From: Macrostomum lignano
Lineage: Eukaryota
Reading direction: 5' to 3'
Length of the DNA: 64,000 bases
Assembly: GCA_002269645.1 (NCBI GenBank)
Contig: NIVC01000440.1
Span: forward strand, 62,001 to 126,000
The notes under the pieces were generated by a model, which was not told the DNA's origin, ran no database searches, and saw only the letters and a list, made by a program, of their open reading frames with translations. Below, piece after piece: positions 19,348-57,150 of the stretch. The first letter of the stretch is position 1. Each line of letters begins with the position of its first letter. Both the position numbers and the translations under genes were made by a program.

Positions 19348-24149
<4,802 letters not shown>

Positions 24150-24329
24150 CTTGAAGATCAGTTCAGCGTACTGGTCATTAGACTCCATGCTTGCGGGACG
24201 TGTTTGTTTTGTGTTTGGTTCTGTAGTGTTCAAATTTTCCAAAATATATATGCTATCCATACTATAATACATTAGTATGTAAATTAGTATTATATTTGTA
24301 TATTATTTGTATATTAGTATTAATACATT

Positions 24330-24982: not shown

Positions 24983-25269
24983 GTCTTTATTCTATTTGCT
25001 TCTTAACTCGTCACAAGCGTCACTTGCCTTGTCCCAGAGTCGTTTCAGAGTTGCAGGCAATAAAACGCTTCAAAGTGACTCTTAGGTGACTCTAACAACT
25101 ATCTATCAGTGTAAAGCGCGTGTTTGTTTAAAAAAAAATTTGTGTTAAATAAACTTTGTTTCTCATTCATTGTAATCTTGCCAGGTAGTTTCATTTCTAG
25201 ATAATTCTTATTTCAATGTATAGAGATGAATTTTATACAAGATAATTTGTATATTAATCCACCCTCAAA

Positions 25270-28200
25270 AATGTCTGGACACCTCAAAATCCGCCCGAAA
25301 GAATCTCCGGACACCCTAAAATCTCCGGACATCCCAGAATCCGCCCGAAAGAATCTCCGGACACCCAGAATCCGCCCGAAAGAATCTCCGGACACCCAGA
25401 ATCCGCCCGAATGAATCTCCGGACACCCAGAATCCGCCCGAAAGAATCTCCGGACATCCCAGAATCCGCCCGAAAGAATCTCCTGACATCCCAAAATCTC
25501 CCTGAAAGAATCTCCGGACATCCCAGAATCCGTCCGAAAGAATCTCCGGACATCCCAAAATCTCCCTGAAAGAATCTCCGGACACCCAGAATCCGCCCGA
25601 AAGAATCTCCGGACACCCAGAATCCGCCCGAAAGAATCTCCGGACATCCCAAAATCTCCCTGAAAGAATCCCCGGACATTCCAGAATCCGCCCGAAAAAA
25701 TCCCCGGACATCCCAGAATCCGCCCAAAAAAATCTCCGGACATCCCATAATCCGCCCGAAAGAATCTCCGGACATCCCAGAATCCGCCCGAAAGAATCTT
25801 CGGACATCCCAGAATCCGCCCGAAAGAATCTCCGGACACCCAGAATCCGCCCGAAAAAATCCCCGGACATCCCAGAATCCGCCCGAAAGAATCTCCAGAC
25901 ATCCCAGAATCCGCCCGAAAGAATCTCCGGACACCCAGAATCCGCCCGAAAAAATCCCCGGACATCCCAGAATCCGTCCAAAAGAATCTCCGGACATCCC
26001 AAAATTTGCCCGAAAGAATCTCCGGACACCCAGAATCCGCCCGAAAAAATCCCCGGACATCCCAGAATCCGTCCAAAAGAATCTCCGGACATCCCAGAAT
26101 CCGTCCGAAAGAATCTCCGGACATCCCAGAATCCGTCCGAAAGAATCTCCGGACATCCCAGAATCCGTCCAAAGAATCTCCGGACATCCCAGAATCCGTC
26201 CGAAAGAATCTCCGGACATCCCAGAATCCGTCCGAAAGAATCTCCGGACATCCCAAAATCTCCCTGAAAAAATCTCCAGACACCCAGAATCCGCCCGAAA
26301 GAATCTCCGGACACCCAGAATCCGCCCGAAAGAATCTCCGGACATCCCAAAATCTCCCTGAAAGAATCCCCGGACATTCCAGAATCCGCCCGAAAAAATC
26401 CCCGGACATCCCAGAATCCGCCCAAAAGAATCTCCGGACATCCCAGAATCCGCCCGAAAGAATCTCCGGACATCCCAGAATCCGCCCGAAAGAATCTTCG
26501 GACATCCCAGAATCCGCCCGAAAGAATCTCCGGACACCCAGAATCCGCCCGAAAAAATCCCCGGACATCCCAGAATCCGCCCGAAAGAATCTCCGGACAT
26601 CCCAGAATCCGCCCGAAAGAATCTCCGGACATCCCAGAATCCGCCCGAAAAAATCCCCGGACATCCCAGAATCCGCCCGAAAGAATCTCCAGACATCCCA
26701 GAATCCGCCCGAAAGAATCTCCGGACACCCAGAATCCGCCCGAAAAAATCCCCGGACATCCCAGAATCCGTCCAAAGAATCTCCGGACATCCCAGAATCC
26801 GTCCAAAGAATCTCCGGACATCCCAGAATCCGTCCAAAGAATCTCTGGATATCCCAGAATCCGCCCGAAAGAATTTCCGGACATCCCAAAATCTCCGCGA
26901 AAGAATCTTCTGACATCCCAGAATCCGCCCGAAAGAATCTCCGGACATCCCAGACTCCGCCCGAAAGAATCTCCGGACATCCCAGAATCCGCCCGAAAGA
27001 ATCTCCGGACATCCCAGAATCCGTCCGAAAGAATCTCCGGACATCCCAGAATCCGCCCGAAAGAATCTCCGGACATCCCAGAATCTGCCCGAAAGAATCT
27101 CCGGACACCCAGAATCCGCCCGAATGAATCTCCGGACATCCCAGAATCCGCCCGAAAGAATCTCCGGACACCCAGAATCCGCCCGAAAGAATCTCCTGAC
27201 ATCCCAAAATCTCCCTGAAAGAATCTCCGGACACCCAAAATCCGCCCGAAAAAATCCCCGGACATCCCAGAATCCGCCCGAAAGAATCTCCGGACATCCC
27301 AGAATCCGCCCGAAAGAATCTCCGGACATCCCAGAATCCGCCCGAAAAAATCCCCGGACATCCCAGAATCCGCCCGAAAGAATCTCCAGACATCCCAGAA
27401 TCCGCCCGAAAGAATCTCCGGACACCCAGAATCCGCCCGAAAGAATCTCCTGACATCCCAAAATCTCCCTGAAAGAATCTCCGGACACCCAAAATCCGCC
27501 CGAAAAAATCCCCGGACATCCCAGAATCCGCCCGAAAGAATCTCCGGACATCCCAGAATCCGCCCGAAAAAATCCCCGGACATCCCAGAATCCGCCCGAA
27601 AGAATCTCCAGACATCCCAGAATCCGCCCGAAAGAATCTCCGGACACCCAGAATCCGCCCGAAAGAATCTCCTGACATCCCAAAATCTCCCTGAAAGAAT
27701 CTCCGGACACCCAAAATCCGCCCGAAAAAATCCCCGGACATCCCAGAATCCGCCCGAAAGAATCTCCGGACATCCCAGAATCCGCCCGAAAGAATCTCCG
27801 GACATCCAGAATCCGCCCGAAAAAATCCCCGGACATCCCAGAATCCGCCCGAAAGAATCTCCAGACATCCCAGAATCCGCCCGAAAGAATCTCCGGACAC
27901 CCAGAATCCGCCCGAAAAAATCCCCGGACATCCCAGAATCCGTCCAAAGAATCTCCGGACATCCCAGAATCCGTCCAAAGAATCTCCGGACATCCCAGAA
28001 TCCGTCCAAAGAATCTCCGGACATCCCAGAATCCGCCCGAAAGAATTTCCGGACATCCCAAAATCTACGCGAAAGAATCTTCTGACATCCCAGAATCCGC
28101 CCGAAAGAATCTCCGGACATCCCAGACTCCGCCCGAAAGAATCTCCGGACATCCCAGAATCCGTCCGAAAGAATCTCCGGACATCCCAGAATCCGCCCGA

Positions 28201-29515
28201 AAGAATCTCCGGACATCCCAGAATCCGCCCGAAAGAATCTCCGGACATCCCAGAATCTGCCCGAAAGAATCTCCGGACACCCAGAATCCGCCCGAATGAA
28301 TCTCCGGACATCCCAGAATCCGCCCGAAAGAATCTCCGGACACCCAGAATCCGCCCGAAAGAATCTCCGGACATCCCAGAATCCGCCCGAAAAAATCCCC
28401 GGACATCCCAGAATCCGCCCGAAAGAATCTCCAGACATCCCAGAATCCGCCCGAAAGAATCTCCGGACACCCAGAATCCGCCCGAAAGAATCTCCTGACA
28501 TCCCAAAATCTCCCTGAAAGAATCTCCGGACACCCAAAATCCGCCCGAAAAAATCCCCGGACATCCCAGAATCCGCCCGAAAGAATCTCCGGACATCCCA
28601 GAATCCGCCCGAAAAAATCCCCGGACATCCCAGAATCCGCCCGAAAGAATCTCCAGACATCCCAGAATCCGCCCGAAAGAATCTCCGGACACCCAGAATC
28701 CGACCGAAAGAATCTCCTGACATCCCAAAAACTCCCTGAAAGAATCTCCGGACACCCAAAATCCGCCCGAAAAAATCCCCGGACATCCCAGAATCCGCCC
28801 GAAAGAATCTCCGGACATCCCAGAATCCGCCCGAAAGAATCTCCGGACATCCCAGAATCCGCCCGAAAAAATCCCCGGACATCCCAGAATCCGCCCGAAA
28901 GAATCTCCAGACATCCCAGAATCCGCCCGAAAGAATCTCCGGACACCCAGAATCCGCCCGAAAAAATCCCCGGACATCCCAGAATCCGTCCAAAGAATCT
29001 CCGGACATCCCAGAATCCGTCCAAAGAATCTCCGGACATCCCAGAATCCGTCCAAAGAATCTCCGGACATCCCAGAATCCGCCCGAAAGAATTTCCGGAC
29101 ATCCCAAAATCTCCGCGAAAGAATCTTCTGACATCCCAGAATCCGCCCGAAAGAATCTCCGGACATCCCAGACTCCGCCCGAAAGAATCTCCGGACATCC
29201 CAGAATCCGTCCGAAAGAATCTCCGGACATCCCAGAATCCGCCCGAAAGAATCTCCGGACATCCCAGAATCCGCCCGAAAGAATCTCCGGACATCCTAGA
29301 ATCTGCCCGAAAGAATCTCCGGACACCCAGAATCCGCCCGAATGAATCTCCGGACATCCCAGAATCCGCCCGAAAGAATCTCCGGACACCCAGAATCCGC
29401 CCGAAAGAATCTCCTGACATCCCAAAATCTCCCTGAAAGAATCTCCGGACACCCAAAATCCGCCCGAAAAAATCCCCGGACATCCCAGAATCCGTCCGAA
29501 AGAATCTCCGGACAT
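25270..29515. repeat. ~4.25-kb satellite-like array of 31/32-bp units (CCGGACATCCCAGAATCCGCCCGAAAGAATCT) with higher-order variant blocks
   Basis: Directly visible; the 900-1400 aa ORFs here are artefacts. Confidence 0.98.
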
Positions 29516-29661: not shown

Positions 29662-31284
29662 ATGGCATTCTGGAAGAAGCCAACAGTGCAGGAGCAGATG
29701 CGGGCCAACGATCGGGAGCTGAAGAAGACCCAGCGAGATCTGGAACGCGACCGGGGCCATCTGGAGCGCGAGGAGAAACGCATCGAAGGGGAGATTAAAA
29801 AAGCAGCAAAGCAGGGCAACAAGGAGGCCTGCTCGGTGCTGGCGAAACAGCTGGTCCGCCTGCGGCAGCAGAAGACCCGCAGCTACGCTATGGGCAGCAA
29901 AGTGTCCGCTGTTGGCACTCAACAGAAAGTGATGGGCGCCAATTTGAAAATGGCCGACGCTATGAAGACCACGACAAAGACTATGGGCCAGATGAATAAA
30001 GCGATGTCGCCGGAGGACACCATGAAAACTATGCGTCAGTTTCAGGAGTCCAACATGAAGATGGAGATGTCCGAGGAGACTATGAACGAAGCTTTGGACG
30101 ACATTTTTGCCGGCTCGGATGATGAAGCTGAGCAGGATAAGGTGAGAGGCTGGACTGTGATCAATAGTAATCCCATAGGATTATTAGCAATAGATTTCAT
30201 GTTTTTCCTATTAGATTTCATATTTATCCCAATGGAAAATCCATATTTTTCCACATTCAGGATCCATATCTATCGCAATTAAAAATTTATATTTATCCCA
30301 ATTGAAAATCCATATTTATACCTATTCAGAATTCATATTTATCCCGATTTGGAATCCATATTTATCCTTATTCAGTGAAGAGTTTATTGGGTGGTGATGA
30401 GTCACTCAATAACTCCCTACGTCCGAAACGTAACGGATAACTCAATTCAAATCAATAATCCTCTAGGAATGTATCCTAGGAAACAAGGAGGCCTGTCTCA
30501 AATGTGTCGACAATCAATGGCTCTCGTAATCTCAATTAATCAACTTATTAGCGCTAGTAACAAATAACTAAATCGGGTAAACGCTTACGAATCGGTCCGG
30601 ATTTCTTCTCTCAGAGATGGGTCTTCTTAGTTGACGTATTCCAAGGTATTCCTTGAGACCTCTCTGAGTCTGAAGGGGTCATGCATGTTTGATCGTTTCC
30701 ATATATGGAATTAAGCAAATACAACTCCCGAGAACCGGTTCCTTGATCAAATAAACGTCGGTCCTACGTAGGGCTCTGAGTCACTTCTGTTTGCACGTGA
30801 CTCATTCTAAAAATAGAATTTATAAAAATAGATATGACTCATCATGACTCATTCTAAAATTAGATTGCGAGTTTAAATTAATTTTATTAGAATATTATAT
30901 TAGGTAGTGCGTTCTGATATGATTTACAGTTCTCTACATCAGAATCCATATTTATCCCCATTCAGAATCCATATTTATCCCCATTCAGAATCCATATTTA
31001 TCCGGTATCCCCATTCAGAATCCATATTTATCCCCATTCAGAATCCATATTTATCCCACTCAAAATCGAGTTCCCTATCATATTGCACATGACTCCCATA
31101 CCCATCAACCAACTCCCGCCAGGTAGTGGCCCAAGTCCTAGATGAAATCGGCATCGACATGAATGCCCAGATGTCCAAGGCGCCGTCTACGTCGGCAGCA
31201 ACGCCGGGGGCAGCCGCAGCCTCATCTAGCAAAGACGATGACGAAGAGATGCTGAAAAGGCTGGCCGGACTCTCCGCACCTTGA
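29662..31284 (+). CDS. CHMP2B: Charged multivesicular body protein 2B (ESCRT-III), 213 aa
   Basis: Exons 29662-30141 and 31123-31284. NKEACSVLAKQLVRLRQQKTR...MKMEMSEETMNEALDDIFAGSDDE...VAQVLDEIGI matches CHMP2B. Confidence 0.95.
30230..31060. repeat. 23-bp intronic repeat (ATCCATATTTATCCCCATTCAGA) in two blocks separated by ~550 bp of unrelated sequence
   Basis: Blocks at ~30230-30372 and ~30940-31060. Confidence 0.8.
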
Positions 31285-32880: not shown

Positions 32881-32969
32881 TGGCTAGATTAGCAATCCAT
32901 TTTACTTCTTAACGAATGTTACCTAGAATTTTTTTCCGGAATATATATTTGGAAAAAATACTTGTAACG

Positions 32970-32986
32970 TGCTACTCACCCCGCAG
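32970..32986 (+). promoter_or_regulatory. 3' splice acceptor in front of the ATG-less CIAO1 ORF (candidate trans-splice site)
   Basis: TGCTACTCACCCCGCAG|GCC; in-frame TAG at 32924-32926 with no in-frame ATG in between. Confidence 0.6.
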
Positions 32987-33639
32987 GCCTCAGTAGTATC
33001 ATTAGCGCAGACCCTAGACGGCCACTCGGACAGGGTGTGGTGCGTCGCTTGGTCACCCGACGGCCGATTGTTGGCCACCTGCGGCGGGGATAAAACTATT
33101 CGCCTGTGGCAGTGCGAGCTGAGCACAGATCAAAGCAACAACAGGCGCTTGAGTCACTGCGACACCCTGAGTGGCGAGCACCACCGAACCATTCGATCTG
33201 TCGCCTTCTCGCCCTGCAGTAGACGATTGGCCTGCGGCAGCTTCGATGCAACTATTACAGTTTATAGCAGGCAGGACGGCGAGGTTGGGAGTCGATTCGA
33301 ATCCGTGGCCAAGCTGGAGGGTCACGAGAACGAGGTCAAGGACGTGGCCTGGTCCCCGTCGGGTCACTATCTGGCCACGTGCGGACGGGACAAGAGTCTG
33401 TGGGTGTGGGAAAGTGAGTTTTCTCGCCTGCGTTCGTGTTGCTTCAATGAATTTTTCGCTACATATCGGCTGGCTAGGCTATTGGTTGAGAATGATTGAA
33501 TTGATTGAGACAGACTGGCAGACAGGCATACAGACAGAGAGACAGACAGACACACACAGACAGACAGGCAGACAGACAGACAGACAGACAGACACACACA
33601 GACAGACAGGCAGACAGACAGACAGACAGACAGACACAC

Positions 33640-42909: not shown

Positions 42910-45436
42910 TTAGGTCTCGGCGGCCAAGTAGCGGCGCAGCTCGGCATCCTCCTGATCGTGGACAAACTTATCAAACGCCTGCAAGCGTTGATGACGCTGC
43001 GGGTCGCTTTGAGTCTCATCATCATCATCAGCCTCCTCAGCTGCCAGCGCCGCCAGGCCGCTCTGCAATACAGAACAGAAAATATCTGCCTTATTGATGA
43101 CTAATCGTCATTAAGATTTAAGATTAATCAACTGAGCTCCTCACCTGCATGGTTGCATAATTTCTCTGATAATTAAACACCGCCCACATCAGGTGCCAAA
43201 CGGAGAAGTCTGGCCACATTGCGTTAACAAAGTGCACGCAGGTGAACTGGGTCTGCAATTGGATTAACGAAATTGAACTTGAAATTGAGCAGAGCCAGCT
43301 CAAAGTCTGAGGTAAACGTGACCCCTGGTTCGATTCCTGGTTCGGCTTGTATGTGCACGGTCGCCGAAGGCGTTGCGCTGGGTGCCTACAGGTCTTCTAC
43401 GTAGTTATTTTGCTGTTATCTAAAATTGAGTACTAATGCCGATATGTATCGAAAAAAACAATATACACTGAGCATTGTTTCCGAATACGAGAAGTTTGAA
43501 GCAGCTATCTTCATTTCATTGACTCCATAGCATACACAAGGGCACAAGGCAAACACTCACACAGCAGTGTATACTGTTTAGCAGCCCTGGAATTATTTAT
43601 CATCAGATGTCTACAATGCACTACTACTAGTAAAAATGCTAGTTCTTTTTATAAATTAACCAGCAGCCATACCTGCCACAGGAGAAAGTCAGACAGTCTG
43701 GTTTCGCCAGAGGTTCGTATCAGCAGGTCGGGCGGCCCCGGGGACAGGTAGGTGCGAGCGCACCGGTCTAGCAGGCGCGGCGTGACGTCATCTGGGAGCA
43801 GGAGGCCGGACCGGACAGCCTGGCCTGCCAAGGACACCGCGTGGGCCATGTCGTCGCGCGAGGTGTACGCGAAGCACACGTTTAGGCGGGCCTTGCTGTG
43901 CGAGCTGAGGGCGGCGAGGTGGGGATACGGGGAGGTGATAGCAGTATTCTTGATGAGTGCTGACTTCTAATTCTGCCGCTGAAGTAAACATTGCAGACCT
44001 GATTCGTTTGACTTTCTCCACTCTATGTGTCATTCTTGAACTGTTTCAACTGAAGAAACACACAATCTCCCAACCCACAACTTCCCAACCCAGAATGACC
44101 ACCAACCCACAACCTCCCAAACCAAGATCACCAAACCCAGAATCTCCTAACTCAATCTCCCAAACCACAAACTTCCAACCCAGAGTGACCCCAAGCCACA
44201 ATCTCCCAACCCAGAGTGACCCCAAGCTACAATCTCCCAACCCAGAATGACCCCAAGCTACAATCTCCCAACCCAGAATGACCCCAAGCTACAATCTCCC
44301 AACCCAGAATGACCCCAAGCTACAATCTCCCAACCCAGAATGACCCCAAGCTACAATCTCCCAACCCAGAATGACCCCAAGCTACAATCTCCCAACCCAG
44401 AGTGACCCCAAGCTACAATCTCCCAACCCAGAGTGACCCCAAGCCACAATCTCCCAACCCAGAGTGACCCCAAGCTACAATCTCCCAACCCAGAATGACC
44501 CCAAGCTACAATCTCCCAACCCAGAGTGACCCCAAGCCACAATCTCCCAACCCAGAGTGACCCCAAGCTACAATCTCCCAACCCAGAGTGACCCCAAGCT
44601 ACAATCTCCCAACCCAGAGTGACCCCAAGCCACAATCTCCCAACCCAGAATGACCCCAAGCCACAATCTCCCAACCCAGAATGACCCCAAGCTACAATCT
44701 CCCAACCCAGAATGACCCCAAGCTACAATCTCCCAACCCAGAATGACCCCAAGCCACAATCTCCCAACCCAGAATGACCCCAAGCTACAATCTCCCAACC
44801 CAGAGTGACCCCAAGCTACAATCTCCCAACCCAGAGTGACCCCAAGCTACAATCTCCCAACCCAGAGTGACCCCAAGCTACAATCTCCCAACCCAGAGTG
44901 ACCCAGGCAGCAGACCTGGTGGCCTGCATGACCCTGGCCGCAGCGGCCCTCAGATCGGCAGGCAGCAGTTGCAGATTGCCCAGCACCCGGACGCAGACCC
45001 CGTAGGCCCGGAGCCGGTCCAACTCCTGCAATAGTCGGTCGAATTTCTGCCTGGCCAGCCGCAAGAGGCCGGCCACCTCCTCGGCGCTCCTGTTGAAATT
45101 CTCGATGCTAAAAGCGTAGACGGTCACTTCGTTAATGCCCAGGTCGCGGCACCATTCCAGCACTTCGCCAACTTTTTGAAAGCCGCGCAGATGGCCCTGC
45201 GATTTCTGCAGGCCGTGACACCTGGCGAATCGCCTATTGCCGTCCATGATAATGGCCAGGTGGTTCAGCAGGGGTCCCTGACCCAGCATGGTCATGGACA
45301 AGCGCTGCATAGCTGTGTACTGCGCCCCAGTGCGAATCCATTCGTCCTCAGGGATGGCTGCGGAGTCTTGGCTGGTGTCCTGAGGCGGCTCCGCTGGCCC
45401 AGGAGAGGGGCCGGCAGTGGGCAATGGTTGGGATTG
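42910..45436 (-). CDS. DHDDS: cis-prenyltransferase / dehydrodolichyl diphosphate synthase catalytic subunit (~338 aa)
   Basis: Exons 45436-44916, 43904-43673, 43252-43145, 43062-42910. HLAIIMDGNRRFAR, VTVYAFSIENFNRS, LNVCFAYTSR, PDLLIRTSGETRLSDFLLWQ, WPDFS. Start codon unresolved. Confidence 0.93.
44065..44903. repeat. 31-bp intronic minisatellite (CAATCTCCCAACCCAGARTGACCCCAAGCTA)
   Basis: About 25 copies in the first DHDDS intron. Confidence 0.95.
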
Positions 45437-45779
45437 CTGCAAGTTGAACAGATACAGATAGATAGCTTAGTTAATGGCATTTTTGTAGGCAAAAACTGAG
45501 ATGGCTATGCCTATGTAAAGTGGGGGCAGTAGCCCAGTGTTCCAGGGTGGCGTTCTGCTGTGCCAGCAGCCCAGGCTCGATTCCAAGTGCAGTCACATTA
45601 AATTTGGGGCTGAATTAGAATCTTGGCTTGGCTCTGCTCGTGCAATTAACACCCAGCTTGAGGGCCAACCGGCCAACCCCCAAGGCACAGTGAAGTGTAC
45701 ATGCCTAACGATTAATAAAGTGCCTTAATAAAGTAAAAAGGGCTTGTGCTTGCTCAGGGAGTTGGTAGAATATGCAATA

Positions 45780-50208: not shown

Positions 50209-53200
50209 ATGAATCTAAGCAAGCAGACTGGATTTGTTACAATCGGACCGGATGATCACGACGAAAATGGTGAGTAATCTAACCTGATTGCCCAACCAAT
50301 GCAATATTGTTAGATAGTAAACTGGAGCACGAAAGAGATGATAGACAAGAGATCTGAACTAAGAGGCAGATTGGTCTAAGGAACTGAATCGCATAAAAAG
50401 AGAAGGGGAGTGAGAGAAAGGGAGTGAGATGGAGAGACCGGGAGTGAGATGGAGAGACCGGGAGTGAGATGGAGAGACCGGGAATGAGATGGAGAGACCG
50501 GGAGTGAGATGGAGAGAATGGAGTGAGATAAAGAGAAAGGGGTGAGATGAAGAGAAAAGGAGGGAGATGAGAGAGACAGGGGTGAGATTAGATAAAAAAT
50601 ACAGGGGGTGAGATTAGATGAAAAGACAGGGGTGAGATGGTGAGAAAGACAGTGAGATGGAGAGAAGGGGAGAGAGAAGGAGAGAGAGGGAGAGAAGGGG
50701 AGAGAGAAGGGGAGAGAGGAAGAGAAGGGGAGAGAGAAGGGGAGAGAGAAGGGAGAGAGAAGGGGAGAGAGAAGGGGAGAGAGAAGGGGAGAGAGAAGGG
50801 GAGAGAGAAGGGGGGAGAGAAGGGGAGAGAGAAGGGGAGAGAGAAGGGAGAGAGAAGGGGAGAGAAAAGGGGAGAGAGAAGGGGAGAGAGAAGGGGAGAG
50901 AGAAGGGGAGAGAGAAGGGGAGAGAGAAGGGGAGAGAGAAGGGGAGAGAGAAGGGGAGAGAGAAGGGAGAGAGAAGGGGAGAGAAAAGGGGAGAGAGAAG
51001 GGGAGAGAGAAGGGGAGAGAGAAGGGGAGAGAGAAGGGGAGAGAGAAGGGGAGAGAGAAGGGGAGAGAGAAGGGGAGAGAGAAGGGGAGAGAGAAGGGGA
51101 GAGAAAAGGGGAGAGAGAAGGGGAGAGAGAAGGGGAGAGAGGGAGAGCAGCTAGATGAGTAAGGATACAAAAGGAAAGAAAAAAGGATTGAGAGATATAT
51201 GAAAATGATAGTAAAACTGAACTATCTGTAGTTGGGCGTGCCAGAAGATCAAGAAACTTAGCTAACACTGAAATTGCACTAATTAGTATGTTTATGGTTG
51301 CCTTTCACCGAATTTTAAGTACGTGTAACTGAGGAGGCGCCAACTCAAGCTACCGAAGCTAGCGATGAAGCTGCTCACGCTCCTGATGAAGGTGGAACCG
51401 ACGGTCAGATTGCTGCAGAGCAGTCGAACACATCTAGAACTGCTGATGGTGCCATTTTGAGCTCGTCAACTACTCTCAGTAGATCGGGTATGTTGAAGTT
51501 GAGCGCCTCAAAGTGCTAGCTAAAAGTACAAATTTTTATAACTTATTCATGGCAACTAGCTTCTAACATTGCCAGCAGGCAGCATTGACGGAGACCTCTC
51601 CGAAGGTGAAGCCTTCGTACCCGAGATGACCGAGATGGAGCAGTCCAGCGCATGGGCGCCCCACAGCAACGAGAAATCTATCAACGAATTGCACGATTAT
51701 TTCAAAAATTTCTATAGCACAAGACGCATTGTTAAGCAAACTTATCACGAGCTCAAGCGGGCTTGTCAGGGCATCCAGGAGCTTCTGATTGGCAGCAGCA
51801 GCAACAGCGCTTCGGGACTCTTCGAACTGTCCGCCACGGACCGCGGCACAGAGGCTTGGCTGTCGCACAGCGAAGAGCAAACCATCATGAGCGTCCTGCG
51901 CACCGACCCAATACTGCTGGTGCTGGGCGGCAAAGGCAGCGGTAAATCGTCCGTCATCAATGGGATCCTGGGCGCAGATATTTTGCCTAGCAGCGCCGCG
52001 ATGCTGAAGCATCCGTGCAACGGAATCGTGCATTTGAAATACGATGAATCCGGCTACGTTAAAATTGCTAAAAGCACCACCGAGAGGCCTTTGGAGCTGG
52101 AACAGATCAAGGGCGACCTGCAACAGCCGGCTCAAATGCTGGTGAGTTTTCGACTGTGGCTTTTGTGTTAGTGTCTATGGCTTTTGTGGCTGTGTCTATG
52201 GCTTTTGTGGCTTTGTCTATGGCTTTTGTGGCTGTGTCTATGGCTTTTGTGGCTTTTTCTATGGCTTTTGTGGCTGTGTCTATGGCTTTTGTGGCTTTTT
52301 CTATGGCTTTTGTGACTGTTTCTATGGCTTTTGTGGCTTTGTCTATGGCTTTTGTGGCTTTGTCTATGGCTTTGTGGCTGTTTCTATGGCTTTTGTGGCT
52401 GTGTCTATGGCTTTTGTGGCTTTGTCTATGGCTTTGTGGCTGTTTCTATGGCTTTTGTGGCTGTGTCTATGGCTTTTGTGGCTGTGTCTATGGCTTTTGT
52501 GGCTTTGTCTATGGTTTTTGTGGCTGTGTCTATAGCTTTTGTGACTGTGTCTATGGCTTTTGTGGCTTTGTCTATGGCTTTTGATGGCTTTCGTGGCTGC
52601 ATGTGTCTCTTCTCAAATCTGATATGTTACTTCGAACTAACAATTATTTAATACTTGCTATCTAAACATTATTACATCTATTTTATCATTTGGACTGTAG
52701 CGTCACCGCACATCGAATCAGGTGCGCGAGTTTATTGAGGAAGTGATGAGCGACGAAGAGCGTGCAGCCTGGGGCAGCCTTGACAACTGTGTGCTGGAGA
52801 TTGGAGTCAAGAATCCCATATTGAGAACCCGGGTGCAGTTCCTGGAGATACCGGGCGACTGTTTTGATCCTAAGCTGCGGGAACGGCTGCTGAGACAGCT
52901 GTTCGGATTTAACCACCAGACTGTGGTGTACATCATCGACGGCAATAAGGGCTTGGGGAACTCGGTGAGTCCGTTTTTTAATGTATTTTCAATTTTTTTA
53001 AAGTTCGCAAGAGGGTTGTGGTCACCCTGGCGCAGCCCCTTTTGGCCACATCACCGCACAACCGGCGGCTCATTTAAAGTGTACAACAGCCCTGACTTTC
53101 TAATCGTTAGTCGTGCACACTCTGGGCCTTGGAGTTGACTCTCGCGGTCGTGAATTGTTTGACAAACGAACCGAGTGACTTTGGTAGAGTCTGACGCATA

Positions 53201-56200
53201 ATCGCTCACTTAATAGTCTTATTTTAACTGATCTGCATACACGAGCAACAAGTACATGCAAGTTGGTTAATTGGGGTCTTAAGATTTACGTTTACTTTGC
53301 AGATAAATAAATTTATTGATTGATGACACCTGTCTCAATGGGCTATTGCGCGGCGCATCTGAAGGCTGCGTACGGCTGTTCAGTCCAAGTACGGGGGGGG
53401 GGGGTCGCCACACACCCTGAATTTATTACCCCTGCTAAAGCTGATACCCATTTTTCAGCTGGGTGAACTGAAACAATGCAGAGTTAAGTGTCTTGCTTAA
53501 GGACACAAATTGTTCCGAGTTGGGACGGGATTCGAACCCCCGACCTTTCAGTCGTGAGTCCGACGCTCTAGCCACTAGGCTAAAAGGCATTTAGAGTTTA
53601 CTTCCCTCATTGACCACTGGTAATACAGACTGCTTTGACTTTCGCCTTCAGTACTCACTGTTGCCAGGGGCGTCGCCATTGGATTTTATGGTGGGGGGAC
53701 AAAGCCAAGAATTCAACATGTACATTTACATGACAAAATTCCTACATGTTTATTATTTGGAGAATCAGTGTTGTCAGCGCTCACTTTAGCGCCGCAAGCA
53801 CTCATTTTGGCGCCGTAGGCATTCCTTTTGGCGCCACAGGCACTCATTTTGGCGCCGTAGGCATTCCTTTTGGCGCCACAGGCACTCATTTTGGCGCCGC
53901 AAACACTCATTTTGGCGCCGTAGGCATTCCTTTTAGCGCCACAGGCACTCATTTTGGCGCCGTAGGCATTCCTTCTAGCGCCACAGGCACTCATTTTGGC
54001 GCCGCAGGCATTCCTTCTAGCGCCACAGGCACTCATTTTGGCGCCGTAGGCATTCCTTTTAGCGCCACAGGCACTCATTTTGGCTCCGTAGGCATTCCTT
54101 CTAGCGCCACAGACACTCATTTTGGCGCCGCAGGCATTCCTTCTAGCGCCACAGGCACTCATTTTGGCGCCGCAGGCACTCATTTTGGCGCCGCAAGCAC
54201 TCATTTTGGCGCCGCAAGCACTCATTTTGGCGCCGCAAGCACTCATTTTGGCGCCGTAGGCATTCCTTTTAGCGCCACAGGCACTCATTTTGGCTCCGTA
54301 GGCACTCATTTTGGCGCCGCAGGCGCTATATTTTGCGCCCTGAAGAAAAAATTATTGATTTCCAAAATATTTTTTCGGCTCGCATGACTTTCAGAATTAG
54401 GAAATTTAATTCGCTACCTTGCCTGCCGGGGCTGCTAGTCCGGTCTGAATTGTATTGTTCTTGTAGAGTAAAACAATTTTATCGGATGGAATATCTATGG
54501 AAATTCGCTTCGGTTTAAATCTGCAAGCGGGCCTGACTCTTTGAAGGTAAAAAATATCAGGCTACAACCCAATATTACCTTGAAGAGTATTTATCTAATG
54601 ACCCCCCGTATTTGATTATTCATAAATCTAACCGTCCGTAATTTTTGAGCATTAAAATCTCCAGAATATCGAGAGACATTTTTGTACATTTAAGCTGCTT
54701 AGGCAGCGATTAGATTTTTTCGTAGATTTCCAACGTAAGCATTCACTGGTGGCAAATCCATAAATATGTCTGTCTGGCACCCTCCGCCCACGCAGGATCG
54801 CGAGTTTCTCTTCTTTCTCAAAGCCAGCATTCCGGATATTCGCATATTCTTCGTCATCAACAAAGTTGACTACGATCCCGAGGCCGAGGAGATGGACGGC
54901 GACTCGGACCTGGAGGACTCGGAGCTGTCGGACTCTCGCTTCCACGACAGCGGCTTGCAGACGCAGCGGAGAAAGCAGAGACTTGTGGTGGACCAGCTGG
55001 CCAAGTACAAGCTGACGGGCGGCAGTGGCAGGCAGACAGTCTATCCCGTGTCCGTGCTGCGCCAGCGCTTCCCCCTCGATGGCGACTCGGAGCAGATCAG
55101 CCAGCTCAACAAAGACTACGAGGCGCAGTACCAGGCGATGGTGGCAGCGCTCAAGGACTGCCTACTGGAGACTGGACGAAGTCGGATGGAGTTGGCCCTC
55201 TCTACACTCTTCCTGGTGTCCGTGCGCACATTCGACGCCTTCACTCGAGACTCCGGCGCCGAGGCGGAGGAAGGAGCCCAGCTGGCCGAGCAGGCCTCTA
55301 AGGAGCGCATCCTGCAGAGCTTCCGAGACACCAAAACCAAGCTGAAAGAGTGCAAATCGAAATTTCTACAGGAGCTGACGGATATCCACAAGCGCAGCGA
55401 GAAGGCCATTATTGACGAGTGCCGACGACTGGAGTTCGGGCCGCTGCGGTTGTACAGCAGGATCAGGAACAACGAGGTTGAGCAGCAATACCGGGAGCAG
55501 ATTAATAACTACGTGTTGCACCTGCTCAATGTGGAGATTCAAGAGTCGCTTGAAAGACAGATCAACGATCTGAGGACGGTGCTGTTCAACGAGGTTGAAA
55601 AGCTTAAAAAGATGTTCTCGAACGCGTCGAAAGACCAGCCGTCAAGTCCTTGGCAGGATCTAATTCGTACTCACGCCGACGAGCTCGTCATGAACATTGT
55701 TAAGCTTAATTTTAGCGTCGAATGGAAATCCGAGGCCGGCTTCATAAAATGGGTCAGGAAGCTGTGGACGGCCGCCACGGTCAACAAGAACAAAGGCATG
55801 AACCCCAACACTCCCGAGTGGAAGAGCGAAGTGGCCAAAGAGTTCTACTCGAGCATCGATCTGAACGCAGTGGTTCGCCGGATGTTCGCAGGCGTGGACT
55901 ACACGCTGAAGCAGGCCGAGGCCTGTCTGCTCAACCTGTCCCAGTCACGGCACAAGTTTGCCGCCAAACTGCAGAAACTGCTGGCCAAAGAGATTCCAGC
56001 CGCGCGCAGCGTGTGGCTGAGCGTCCAGTTCTGCTTAGTGTCCGCTGAAGCACTTCGAAACGTTCAAGCCTACGGCCACCTGCCGTCCGCGAACCTGACG
56101 GAGCCAATCGCGTCCACCTGCCTGGGCCAACTTTTCCACTTGACCAGCGGCTACGCCAAATTTGAGCGCACACAGGACTCCGGCATTGGCGTCACAGTAA

Positions 56201-57150
56201 CGCAGCTTTGTAGCAGCGCTGGAGGGGGTCCGGACAACTCGGGGATTGGCTCAACGCTTTGCCTCGGCGGCATCCCGAATCACCATCTGATGAAGGGCAA
56301 TGTAGTTAGAAACCAGCGCTGCGTGGCCATCACTCTGATGGTCACGTTCAACGACAAGTTCGAGCTGTGCGTACTGCATTCCGCGTACAACAGTTCGCTG
56401 CAAGATTTCATCGAGGCTGAGCAGGGCCGGGCGTATACCAAACTGCAAGGCTTTAAAATGATAAAAGATTTGCTGCAAATCTGGAAACTCTTCGGCCAGG
56501 AGACCGCCACTCTGCCCTGGTCGTTGACGCCGAAAAATCTCAAGGTTTGTAGTTTAATTTTTCCTGGAAAGTCTGCGAGAAGCAGATGCTCAGTCAAGAG
56601 TAAACGGTTTACCAGAAAGGTTGCTAGGGCTTTTAGATTTATCATAAATCAGGCAAGCCGGATGTCAGAGTTTCTATTGTCCAACTGTCATATGAATTTC
56701 TCCTATTGTGTCCCCAAACTCCAGACGTCCCACCGACCTGGCGCATCGATTGTCTACGACTACCTGGAGAGCCCGCTGCCGACCCTGCGGAAGGGCCACA
56801 CCTTCGGCGGCCTGCTGTTCACCAAATCCGAGTCCGAGGTTCGCGTCCAAAAGCAGGCAACGGAGTTGAACAACCTGCTGCAGGTGACCTTAATGATCCT
56901 GGTCCGTAGCCCCGTACAGCTCGAGCCCGACGAACTCGACCGGATCGCCGAGCGTGAGCACCCACAGGAGCGTCACCGCGAGTTCAAAGCTTACATTGTG
57001 TCGCAGATTAGCGGTCTGAAGCATTCGCGCGAACTCGACCCGATCCCGGCCGACACGATCGCCAACCTCTGGCACACGGCCGCTGAACGCAAAGTCCGCG
57101 ACATCGAGGAATGGATCGAGAGGGGAATCAAGAAGTGGCAGAATTGTTGA
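50209..57150 (+). CDS. DSTYK-like protein: dynamin-superfamily G domain + helical region + kinase-fold domain lacking catalytic motifs (~1070 aa)
   Basis: Phase-consistent exons 50209-50269, 51320-51487, 51576-52141, 52722-52964, 54796-56544, 56725-57150. LVLGGKGSGKSSVINGILG, FLEIPG, FFVINKVD; TPEWKSEVAKE resembles DSTYK SPGWKRKVAQE (from recall); the C-terminal region aligns with kinase subdomains but has no HRD or DFG. Confidence 0.75.
50395..51155. repeat. GA-rich intronic repeat (GAGAGAAGGGGA-type 12-mer)
   Basis: Directly visible. Confidence 0.95.
52150..52600. repeat. 21-bp intronic minisatellite (GTCTATGGCTTTTGTGGCTGT)
   Basis: About 21 copies. Confidence 0.95.
53303..53585 (-). mobile_element. 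Second copy of the tRNA-headed CORE-like SINE (intronic)
   Basis: Reverse complement reads TAGCCTAGTGG...GGTTCGAATCC...TGTGTCCTTAAGCAAGACACTTAACTCTGCA...CTTGGACTGAACAGCCGTACGCAGCCTTCAGATGC, nearly matching 32571-32880. Confidence 0.85.
53775..54325. repeat. 21/42-bp dimeric intronic minisatellite (GGCACTCATTTTGGCGCCGCA / GGCATTCCTTTTAGCGCCACA)
   Basis: Alternating 21-bp subunits. Confidence 0.92.

Follow-up and report, generated by a model that had tools for sequence, protein, structure and literature searches.

The window, a 64,000-nucleotide stretch of the genome of the flatworm Macrostomum lignano (assembly GCA_002269645.1, contig NIVC01000440.1, positions 62,001 to 126,000 of the forward strand), carries a single gene of the DSTYK family at positions 50209-57150 of its + strand. 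Its product joins a dynamin-like GTPase domain and a long helical stalk to a C-terminal domain that probably descends from a protein kinase. All coordinates below are window positions, and all features of the gene lie on the + strand. After splicing, the reading frame is open from the ATG at 50209 to the TGA at 57148-57150 and comprises six exons (50209-50269, 51320-51487, 51579-52141, 52701-52964, 54796-56544, and 56725-57150), all bordered by GT..AG. The product is one protein of 1076 residues, 99.6% identical to M. lignano A0A1I8GKD9 (public model P0001), which has the UniRef name “Dynamin_N domain-containing protein”, differs at 4 of the 1076 residues, and shares the same exon junctions. 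At this level of identity, the locus is taken to be the M. lignano gene itself or a near-identical copy, and tblastn finds a single copy of it in the window.

Exon 1 (50209..50269) provides the predicted start codon and residues 1-20 plus one nucleotide, encodes a low-complexity N-terminus, and ends at a GTGAGT donor at 50270; it matches residues 1-20 of P0001 at 100% by tblastn and has a predicted local distance difference test score (pLDDT) below 35. Exon 2 (51320..51487; acceptor TTTAAG, donor GTATGT) encodes residues 21-76, an acidic, Ala/Thr-rich, and predicted disordered segment that is likewise a 100% match to P0001, with a pLDDT of ~30. Exon 3 (51579..52141) contributes an N-terminal helix resembling a bundle signalling element and the start of the G domain, including G1, the G2 equivalent, and the beginning of the Dynamin_N match. 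Its acceptor is a tandem CAGCAG (NAGNAG) at 51573-51578, so that 51576 is also usable with a difference of one Ala; the public model uses 51579. Exon 4 (52701..52964) encodes the middle of the G domain with the G3 equivalent. Here two in-frame acceptors lie 21 nucleotides apart (52700 and 52721; window 52699-52721): P0001 uses 52701, and a start at 52722 would lose RHRTSNQ, a stretch of the G domain that lies between G2 and G3. Exon 5 (54796..56544) holds G4, the helical stalk, the pre-kinase linker, and the N-lobe-like part of the C-terminal domain, and exon 6 (56725..57150) holds the C-lobe-like part and the terminal helices, followed by the stop codon.

The preliminary description of this locus noted that the last open reading frame (ORF), which is uninterrupted from 54766 to 57150, preserves the spacing of kinase motifs. 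The spacing is borne out only after removal of an in-frame intron that this description had missed. Intron 5 (56545..56724, GTTTGT..CTCCAG) is 180 nucleotides long, in frame, and stop-free, a state reached by only 1.8% of its shuffles. Its GC content at third codon positions (GC3) is 0.43, compared to 0.75 and 0.79 in the coding sequence on either side, and its overall GC content is 40.6% versus 56% in the flanks. The low GC3, the absence of the segment from every paralog and homolog, and its removal by splicing in P0001 identify it as an intron. It falls just after the catalytic-loop equivalent and before the DFG equivalent. Retention of intron 5 could add 60 mostly basic residues to the kinase-like domain without breaking the frame, and tolerated or regulated retention is therefore conceivable.

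The G domain is spread over three exons: exon 3 encodes G1 and G2, exon 4 encodes G3, and exon 5 encodes G4. The Dynamin_N match spans all of them, and these exons must thus be joined in one transcript to form one domain. As far as sequence can tell, and given the junctions shared with P0001, the possibility raised earlier that the exons belong to separate transcripts does not apply.

The preliminary description had proposed a dynamin-like GTPase with a long helical stalk, and three observations support this assignment: the Dynamin_N match, the predicted stalk, and the structural matches to bacterial dynamin-like protein (BDLP) and mitofusins. Pfam Dynamin_N covers residues 191-369 with E=2.5e-8 and 34.5 bits against a cut-off of 27, and P0001 scores 35.4 bits with the same family. 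In a sequence search of the PDB, Nostoc BDLP ranks first (2j68, E=0.0014); the remaining matches are weaker ones to the dynamin family (mostly E 0.3-1.2) and one chance kinesin. A full-length AlphaFold2 (AF2) model, built from a 54-sequence alignment, attains a predicted template modelling score (pTM) of 0.70, with a pLDDT of mostly 85-95 in the G domain and stalk and disorder in residues 1-100. The stalk (residues ~451-777, window 55090-56070, pLDDT 85-95) consists of helices at 451-502, 510-562, 579-628, 708-749, and 753-778. When the full-length model is compared to the PDB with Foldseek, BDLP (2j68/2j69) ranks first with E ~1e-13 over ~750 columns that cover the G domain and helical trunk. 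IniA, SynDLP, mitofusin 1/2, and Fzo1 follow (E 1e-13 to 1e-8 for BDLP, IniA, SynDLP, and MFN1/2), and Drp1, OPA1, Mx, and dynamin rank lower. The N-terminal ~780 residues are thus firmly assigned to the BDLP/mitofusin class of dynamin-like GTPases, in which residues ~107-777 comprise the G domain together with an extended neck and trunk of helices.

A transmembrane scan of the protein detects no segment with transmembrane-like hydropathy. Residues 666-679 (AGFIKWVRKLWTAA, window ~55735-55776) form a basic, aromatic, amphipathic helix with a hydrophobic moment of 0.54 and a net charge of +3, which lies directly before the conserved WK..VA linker (PEWKSEVAK, 55813-55839; homologous to the linkers of DSTYK-like proteins). 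Homologs carry similar segments, for example, WLGKLKDFLKTLF. This helix could be the equivalent of a membrane-binding “paddle”.

All of the motifs quoted in the preliminary description are present at the positions given there, and the family alignment confirms both departures it had pointed out in the G domain. The family consensus reads GQTNxGKSS at G1, PCT(A/S)R at G2, (I/V)DxPG at G3, and (N/T/S)K(V/I)D at G4. In the window protein, G1 is kept as GGKGSGKS (residues 193-200, window 51926-51949), in agreement with the P-loop pattern GxxxxGK[ST], and G4 is kept as NKVD (residues 374-377, window 54859-54870), in agreement with [NT]KxD; both fall in the corresponding family columns. The G2 equivalent HPCNG (52010-52024) reads PCN, with the Thr replaced by Asn, while the G3 equivalent FLEIPG (52839-52856) reads LEIPG, with Glu in a column that is Asp in almost all family members. 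The protein therefore has neither the G2 switch-I Thr nor the G3 DxxG of the dynamin superfamily. Its paralogs P0002 and P0004/P0055 are likewise without the G2 Thr, and their G3 residue is Glu; changes common to the Macrostomum paralogs are accordingly old and shared rather than random decay. The intact G1 and G4 make guanine nucleotide binding likely, and normal GTP hydrolysis is doubtful. Slow or atypical hydrolysis is probable given the Asn in place of the family-conserved switch-I Thr and the Glu in place of the G3 Asp, in line with the earlier caveat that hydrolysis might be impaired.

The loss of catalytic residues from both halves of the protein, the long branch it occupies in the family tree, and its minisatellite-filled introns could also be read as the debris of relaxed selection in a decaying DSTYK-like duplicate, that is, a pseudogene. 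Duplicated genes are many in M. lignano, and the P0001 cluster alone has 7 members at ≥90% identity. This explanation is very unlikely, as it is opposed by 1076 codons in six exons without a stop or frameshift, intact splice sites throughout, and an intact P-loop and NKVD. The strong GC3 bias of the coding parts (0.75-0.79), unlike that of the intron, argues for a live gene. Moreover, the G2/G3 substitutions and the tail are common to paralogs that are only 25-40% identical, so these features are old and appear to have been maintained.

The relationship to DSTYK emerges from phmmer, run exhaustively against 1.84 billion representatives, which returns 54 relatives, with non-Macrostomum matches down to E=3.7e-28. 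Dynamin_N is found in 51 of the 54 and a protein kinase domain (Pkinase) in 23; the full-length members of the family are ~850-1190 residues long, with Dynamin_N at the N-terminus and the kinase domain at the C-terminus. Every named relative outside Macrostomum is annotated by NCBI as DSTYK or DSTYK-like (Nematostella, Lingula, Tubulanus, Branchiostoma, Saccoglossus, Ptychodera, and Glandiceps), and none of the 29 relatives (of 54) whose species was looked up is a vertebrate protein. This lack of vertebrate proteins agrees only weakly with a degenerate P-loop in vertebrate DSTYK. The best matches outside Macrostomum combine Dynamin_N with a kinase domain, which bears out the DSTYK relationship proposed earlier. 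Word-indexed searches were less informative. The full protein retrieved solely itself, and an 18-sequence full-length family alignment retrieved no new family members and mostly generic kinases (CTR1, PKN, and bacterial serine/threonine kinases), which served for the generic kinase profile described below. The N-terminal parts of six canonical DSTYKs retrieved two of the query sequences and otherwise mostly unnamed metagenome or bacterial Dynamin_N proteins, several of which carry the name “dynamin family protein”, and no vertebrate DSTYK.

A canonical DSTYK is present in M. lignano as well: P0043 (A0A1I8HXC8, 879 residues), which contains HRDVKLAN, DFG, the β3 Lys, and all four G motifs and clusters in the tree with the canonical DSTYKs of other phyla. 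P0043 was looked for in the window and is not encoded there. Neighbor-joining analysis of the G domain and stalk unites the window protein with P0002 and P0055, both from M. lignano, in a Macrostomum-only clade with 96% bootstrap support. P0002 (746 residues) is 34-40% identical to the window protein. P0055 (PAA92483.1, 1953 residues) has two tandem units of GTPase, stalk, and kinase-like tail, aligned to the query at 138-975 and 1214-1944; a P-loop was not detected in its second unit, and P0055 could represent either a genuine two-unit protein or an artifact of gene-model fusion. P0010, P0060, and P0061 are fragments of P0055. Because of the separate canonical P0043, the window gene is, on the evidence of the alignment and tree, a Macrostomum-specific paralog of the DSTYK family and not its ortholog. 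That the nearest named relatives are all DSTYK or DSTYK-like might suggest a fast-evolving M. lignano ortholog of DSTYK without a separate paralog. Such an ortholog is highly improbable given the intact HRD, DFG, and G1-G4 of P0043, its placement among the canonical DSTYKs of other phyla, and its location outside this window.

The preliminary description had further proposed that the active and dead halves of DSTYK are swapped in this protein. This picture is borne out only in part and is too simple: invertebrate canonical DSTYKs, including P0043, are intact in both halves, and the GTPase of the window protein is non-canonical at G2 and G3. The missing G2 Thr and G3 Asp therefore weaken a tidy division into an active GTPase and a dead kinase. 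Other invertebrate DSTYK-like proteins with an intact P-loop also have non-canonical kinase motifs. In a hemichordate clade, YNDLKxxN precedes INTCKG and the activation segment is missing, while proteins of Nematostella, Lingula, and Tubulanus have xxD...LDISK or INxLK followed by PYPDG. Some of these DSTYK-like proteins, in which the catalytic Asp is retained, could still be active kinases. Judged by these motifs, degeneration of the kinase alongside an intact dynamin-like part recurs in the family and is not unique to the window gene.

In hemichordates and amphioxus, DSTYK-like genes have near-consecutive accession numbers on single contigs. These sets comprise P0034/P0046/P0039/P0025 in Saccoglossus, P0033/P0012/P0020/P0005/P0032 in Ptychodera, and P0013/P0044/P0026 in Branchiostoma. 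Their numbering suggests tandem arrays that mix members with canonical and non-canonical kinases. No clustering with other DSTYK-like genes is seen within the window.

The C-terminal tail (residues ~778-1076) occupies the kinase-domain position of the DSTYK family and is about as long as a kinase domain, and the conserved linker (WK..VA..ID...) aligns with those of DSTYK-like proteins up to the Gly-loop position. In exon 5, the Gly-loop equivalent is IASTCLG (56107-56127), with degenerate glycines. The β3 VAIK equivalent is GVTVT (VTVTQL, 56191-56208), in which Lys is replaced by Thr and TVT is invariant in the paralogs. The αE equivalent is KMIKDLLQIWKLF, in the kinase register from hhalign, and the equivalent of the catalytic-loop HRDLKPxN is LPWSLTPKNL (PWSLTPKN, 56512-56541), with the catalytic Asp replaced by Ser and the Asn kept. 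Exon 6 contributes the DFG equivalent IVYDYL (DYL, 56749-56766), in which the Asp is kept, the P+1/APE equivalent TFGGLLFTKSE (56800-56832), placed by the hhalign register against generic kinases, and the αF equivalent LNNLLQVTLMILV (56866-56904), a hydrophobic helix. In the spliced protein, the HRD, DFG, APE, and αF equivalents are spaced by 19/25/14 residues (own count). The corresponding spacings in PKA are 18/24/12.

The catalytic residues of a kinase are missing, as the preliminary description had stated, with TVT, PWS, and DYL as the equivalents of the VAIK Lys, HRD, and DFG. Kinase activity is not expected because the equivalents of the β3 Lys and the HRD motif are absent in every register considered. 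The register adopted here, with LPWSLTPKNL opposite the HRD motif, is preferred since the 54-sequence MAFFT alignment and each of the three hhalign runs yield it and its spacing is canonical. Two other registers were set aside. MAFFT on the C-terminal regions alone places LPWSLTPK opposite TPFHIAPE (APE) and was rejected, as it would delete αE and the catalytic loop; a register that equates TFGG with DFG was dropped for its poor spacing to αE.

Support for a kinase origin of the tail comes from profile comparison and structure prediction. A profile of the three paralogs, with the linker removed, aligns by hhalign to a generic profile of 58 unrelated kinases collinearly over 269 columns (E=0.022, score 23.0). 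The scores of 150 column shuffles average 13.7 ± 2.1, and none of the 150 reaches 23.0. A separate AF2 model of residues 740-1076 has a pLDDT of 57, with a confident N-lobe-like sheet and a C-lobe below 50. The order of helices in the AF2 models fits αE, αF, αG, αH, and αI, in a region of low confidence. With Foldseek, all top 50 PDB matches of the tail model are protein kinases (E 0.007-0.07, template modelling score ~0.19). In addition, the tail domain is kept in several divergent M. lignano paralogs.

A number of results weigh against this origin and lend some credence to an alternative, in which a DSTYK-family GTPase carries ~300 C-terminal residues that either are a lineage-specific replacement domain without kinase ancestry or have diverged beyond the kinase fold. 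No Pkinase match is found in the window protein, Pfam matches no family to the tail alone at E<=10, and a PDB search with a hidden Markov model of the paralogs yields only chance proteasome matches. Two of the three profile tests are not significant: by hhalign, the kinase part does not rise above shuffles against six canonical DSTYK kinases (z 0.3), nor is it significant against 29 DSTYK-like kinase domains (z 0.67). Most of the C-lobe has a pLDDT below 50 in either AF2 model (30-75 for the tail of the full-length model), the Foldseek E-values and template modelling score given above are weak, and the AF2 alignments included real kinases, which may have biased the models toward a kinase fold. 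The register is also ambiguous, as the C-lobe register of MAFFT alignments varies between two with the sequence set. A non-kinase tail is nonetheless unlikely, because the homologous linker reaches the Gly-loop position, the length is close to that of a kinase domain, the collinear alignment to generic kinases outscores 150 of 150 shuffles, the best structural matches are without exception kinases, and the motif equivalents are canonically spaced once the intron is removed. The pseudokinase proposed in the preliminary description is thus upheld by collinearity, family position, and the all-kinase Foldseek list and is tempered by the null Pfam, PDB, and profile results and by the low-confidence models. 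A kinase origin is likely in view of the position and collinearity of the tail, a single weak profile signal, and models that match only kinases but are of low confidence; the tail is quite probably a kinase-derived pseudokinase.

Taken as a whole, the window gene is probably a DSTYK-family paralog in which a BDLP/mitofusin-class GTPase is followed by a probable pseudokinase tail, and which would serve as a nucleotide-gated scaffold. The intact P-loop and NKVD would let the protein bind guanine nucleotide, and the nucleotide state would control G-domain dimerization and stalk conformation on a membrane, which may be endolysosomal by analogy with vertebrate DSTYK. Slow or atypical hydrolysis would suit a nucleotide-gated scaffold more than a fast mechano-enzyme, and the dead kinase domain would act as a docking or regulatory module instead of an enzyme. 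Apart from the results on the tail, four further points count against this proposal. Both the G2 Thr and the G3 Asp are replaced, which speaks against a working GTPase; the Macrostomum clade, which sits on a long branch with 25% support at the next node, is not placed within the family by the neighbor-joining tree; an exact-sequence look-up of P0001 in assemblies, made for transcript evidence, returned no record; and the function and localization of the protein are proposed entirely by analogy, with vertebrate DSTYK as the sole functional reference.

The window is eukaryotic in character, with introns and many minisatellites. Minisatellites fill the introns of the gene at 50412-51141, 52157-52589, and 53780-54339; they include a purine-rich 12-mer (GAGAGAAGGGGA, x41), a 21-mer (x20.7), and a 42-mer (x13.3) and produce long spurious ORFs on both strands. 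At ~25200-29500, a tandem array of ~4.3 kb gives overlapping repetitive ORFs of 900-1400 residues on the - strand with units such as SGDSFGRILGCPEILSGGFWDVRRFFRAD and resembles satellite DNA more than a gene. Neighboring exons at 29662-30279 (+), 32969-33496 (+), 44819-45442 (-), and ~23800-24150 (+) encode ordinary housekeeping domains, namely, Snf7/ESCRT-III (E=4.5e-33), WD40 repeats, a cis-prenyltransferase (E=5.6e-34), and a Myb DNA-binding domain.

Vertebrate DSTYK works as a catalytically active kinase of late endosomes and lysosomes and also functions in notochord vacuole biogenesis (PMC11933320, PMC6981171). It has been implicated in zebrafish scoliosis-like vertebral malformations via mTORC1/TFEB (PMC6981171), in lung cancer (PMC9524203), and in STING signaling (PMC11933320). 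DSTYK is a disease-linked kinase, and its large non-kinase region is essentially undiscussed: literature searches on DSTYK with dynamin, GTPase, or domain architecture and on pseudokinases with Dynamin_N found no description of the dynamin-like half, for which a Pfam annotation already exists in databases. Invertebrate members of the family have a fully canonical BDLP/mitofusin-type G domain. A broader scenario can be offered as a tentative and rather doubtful one. The DSTYK family would ancestrally, and still in most invertebrates, combine a mitofusin/BDLP-class membrane-remodeling GTPase with a kinase; the Macrostomum branch would have expanded (including the 1953-residue tandem double unit), with its kinase dead and its GTPase residues rewired, to give a nucleotide-gated dynamin-like protein that has a pseudokinase tail and serves as a scaffold on endolysosomal membranes. 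If true, a dynamin-like activity on membranes would underlie what DSTYK does in the cell, which is poorly understood and includes the formation of vacuoles and lysosomes and STING signaling at late endosomes; no paper on this scenario was found in the library searched. As a laboratory-model flatworm with a canonical DSTYK and kinase-dead paralogs, M. lignano provides a natural separation-of-function set that could show the role of the GTPase-stalk module without kinase activity. The window gene by itself is an uncharacterized and already catalogued protein, so the gain lies in the hypothesis more than in a discovery.

Four known systems are instructive for comparison. MLKL resembles the window protein in general idea only, as a dead kinase domain on what would be a membrane-acting module. 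It has no homology to it and pairs its pseudokinase with a four-helix bundle effector instead of a dynamin-like GTPase, and nothing in the analysis supports the immune or MLKL-like role that had been suggested for this gene, or any role in cell death. ROCO proteins such as LRRK2 likewise combine a G domain with a kinase-type domain in a single chain, with a helical dimerization region between them; their G domain is Ras-like (Roc-COR), their kinase is active, and they bear no sequence relationship to the window protein.

Canonical DSTYK and DSTYK-like proteins have the same layout as the window protein: the Dynamin_N G domain is followed by a long helical stalk, which carries a conserved WK..VA..ID linker, and then by ~290 C-terminal residues that make up a domain at the kinase position. 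The canonical members, including P0043, have the VAIK Lys, HRD, DFG, PCT, and DxPG, whereas the window protein has Thr, PWS, DYL, PCN, and ExPG. Vertebrate DSTYK is an active kinase (PMC11933320, PMC6981171), unlike the window protein, of which no such activity is expected. BDLP of Nostoc punctiforme, mitofusins, and IniA differ in several respects: the window protein has no transmembrane segment or recognized paddle, carries an extra C-terminal kinase-like domain, is non-canonical at G2 and G3, and is only ~12-16% identical to them. They nevertheless provide its top PDB sequence match (2j68) and its top structural matches over ~750 columns, and they place it in the fold class of the dynamin-like proteins of membrane fusion and tethering.

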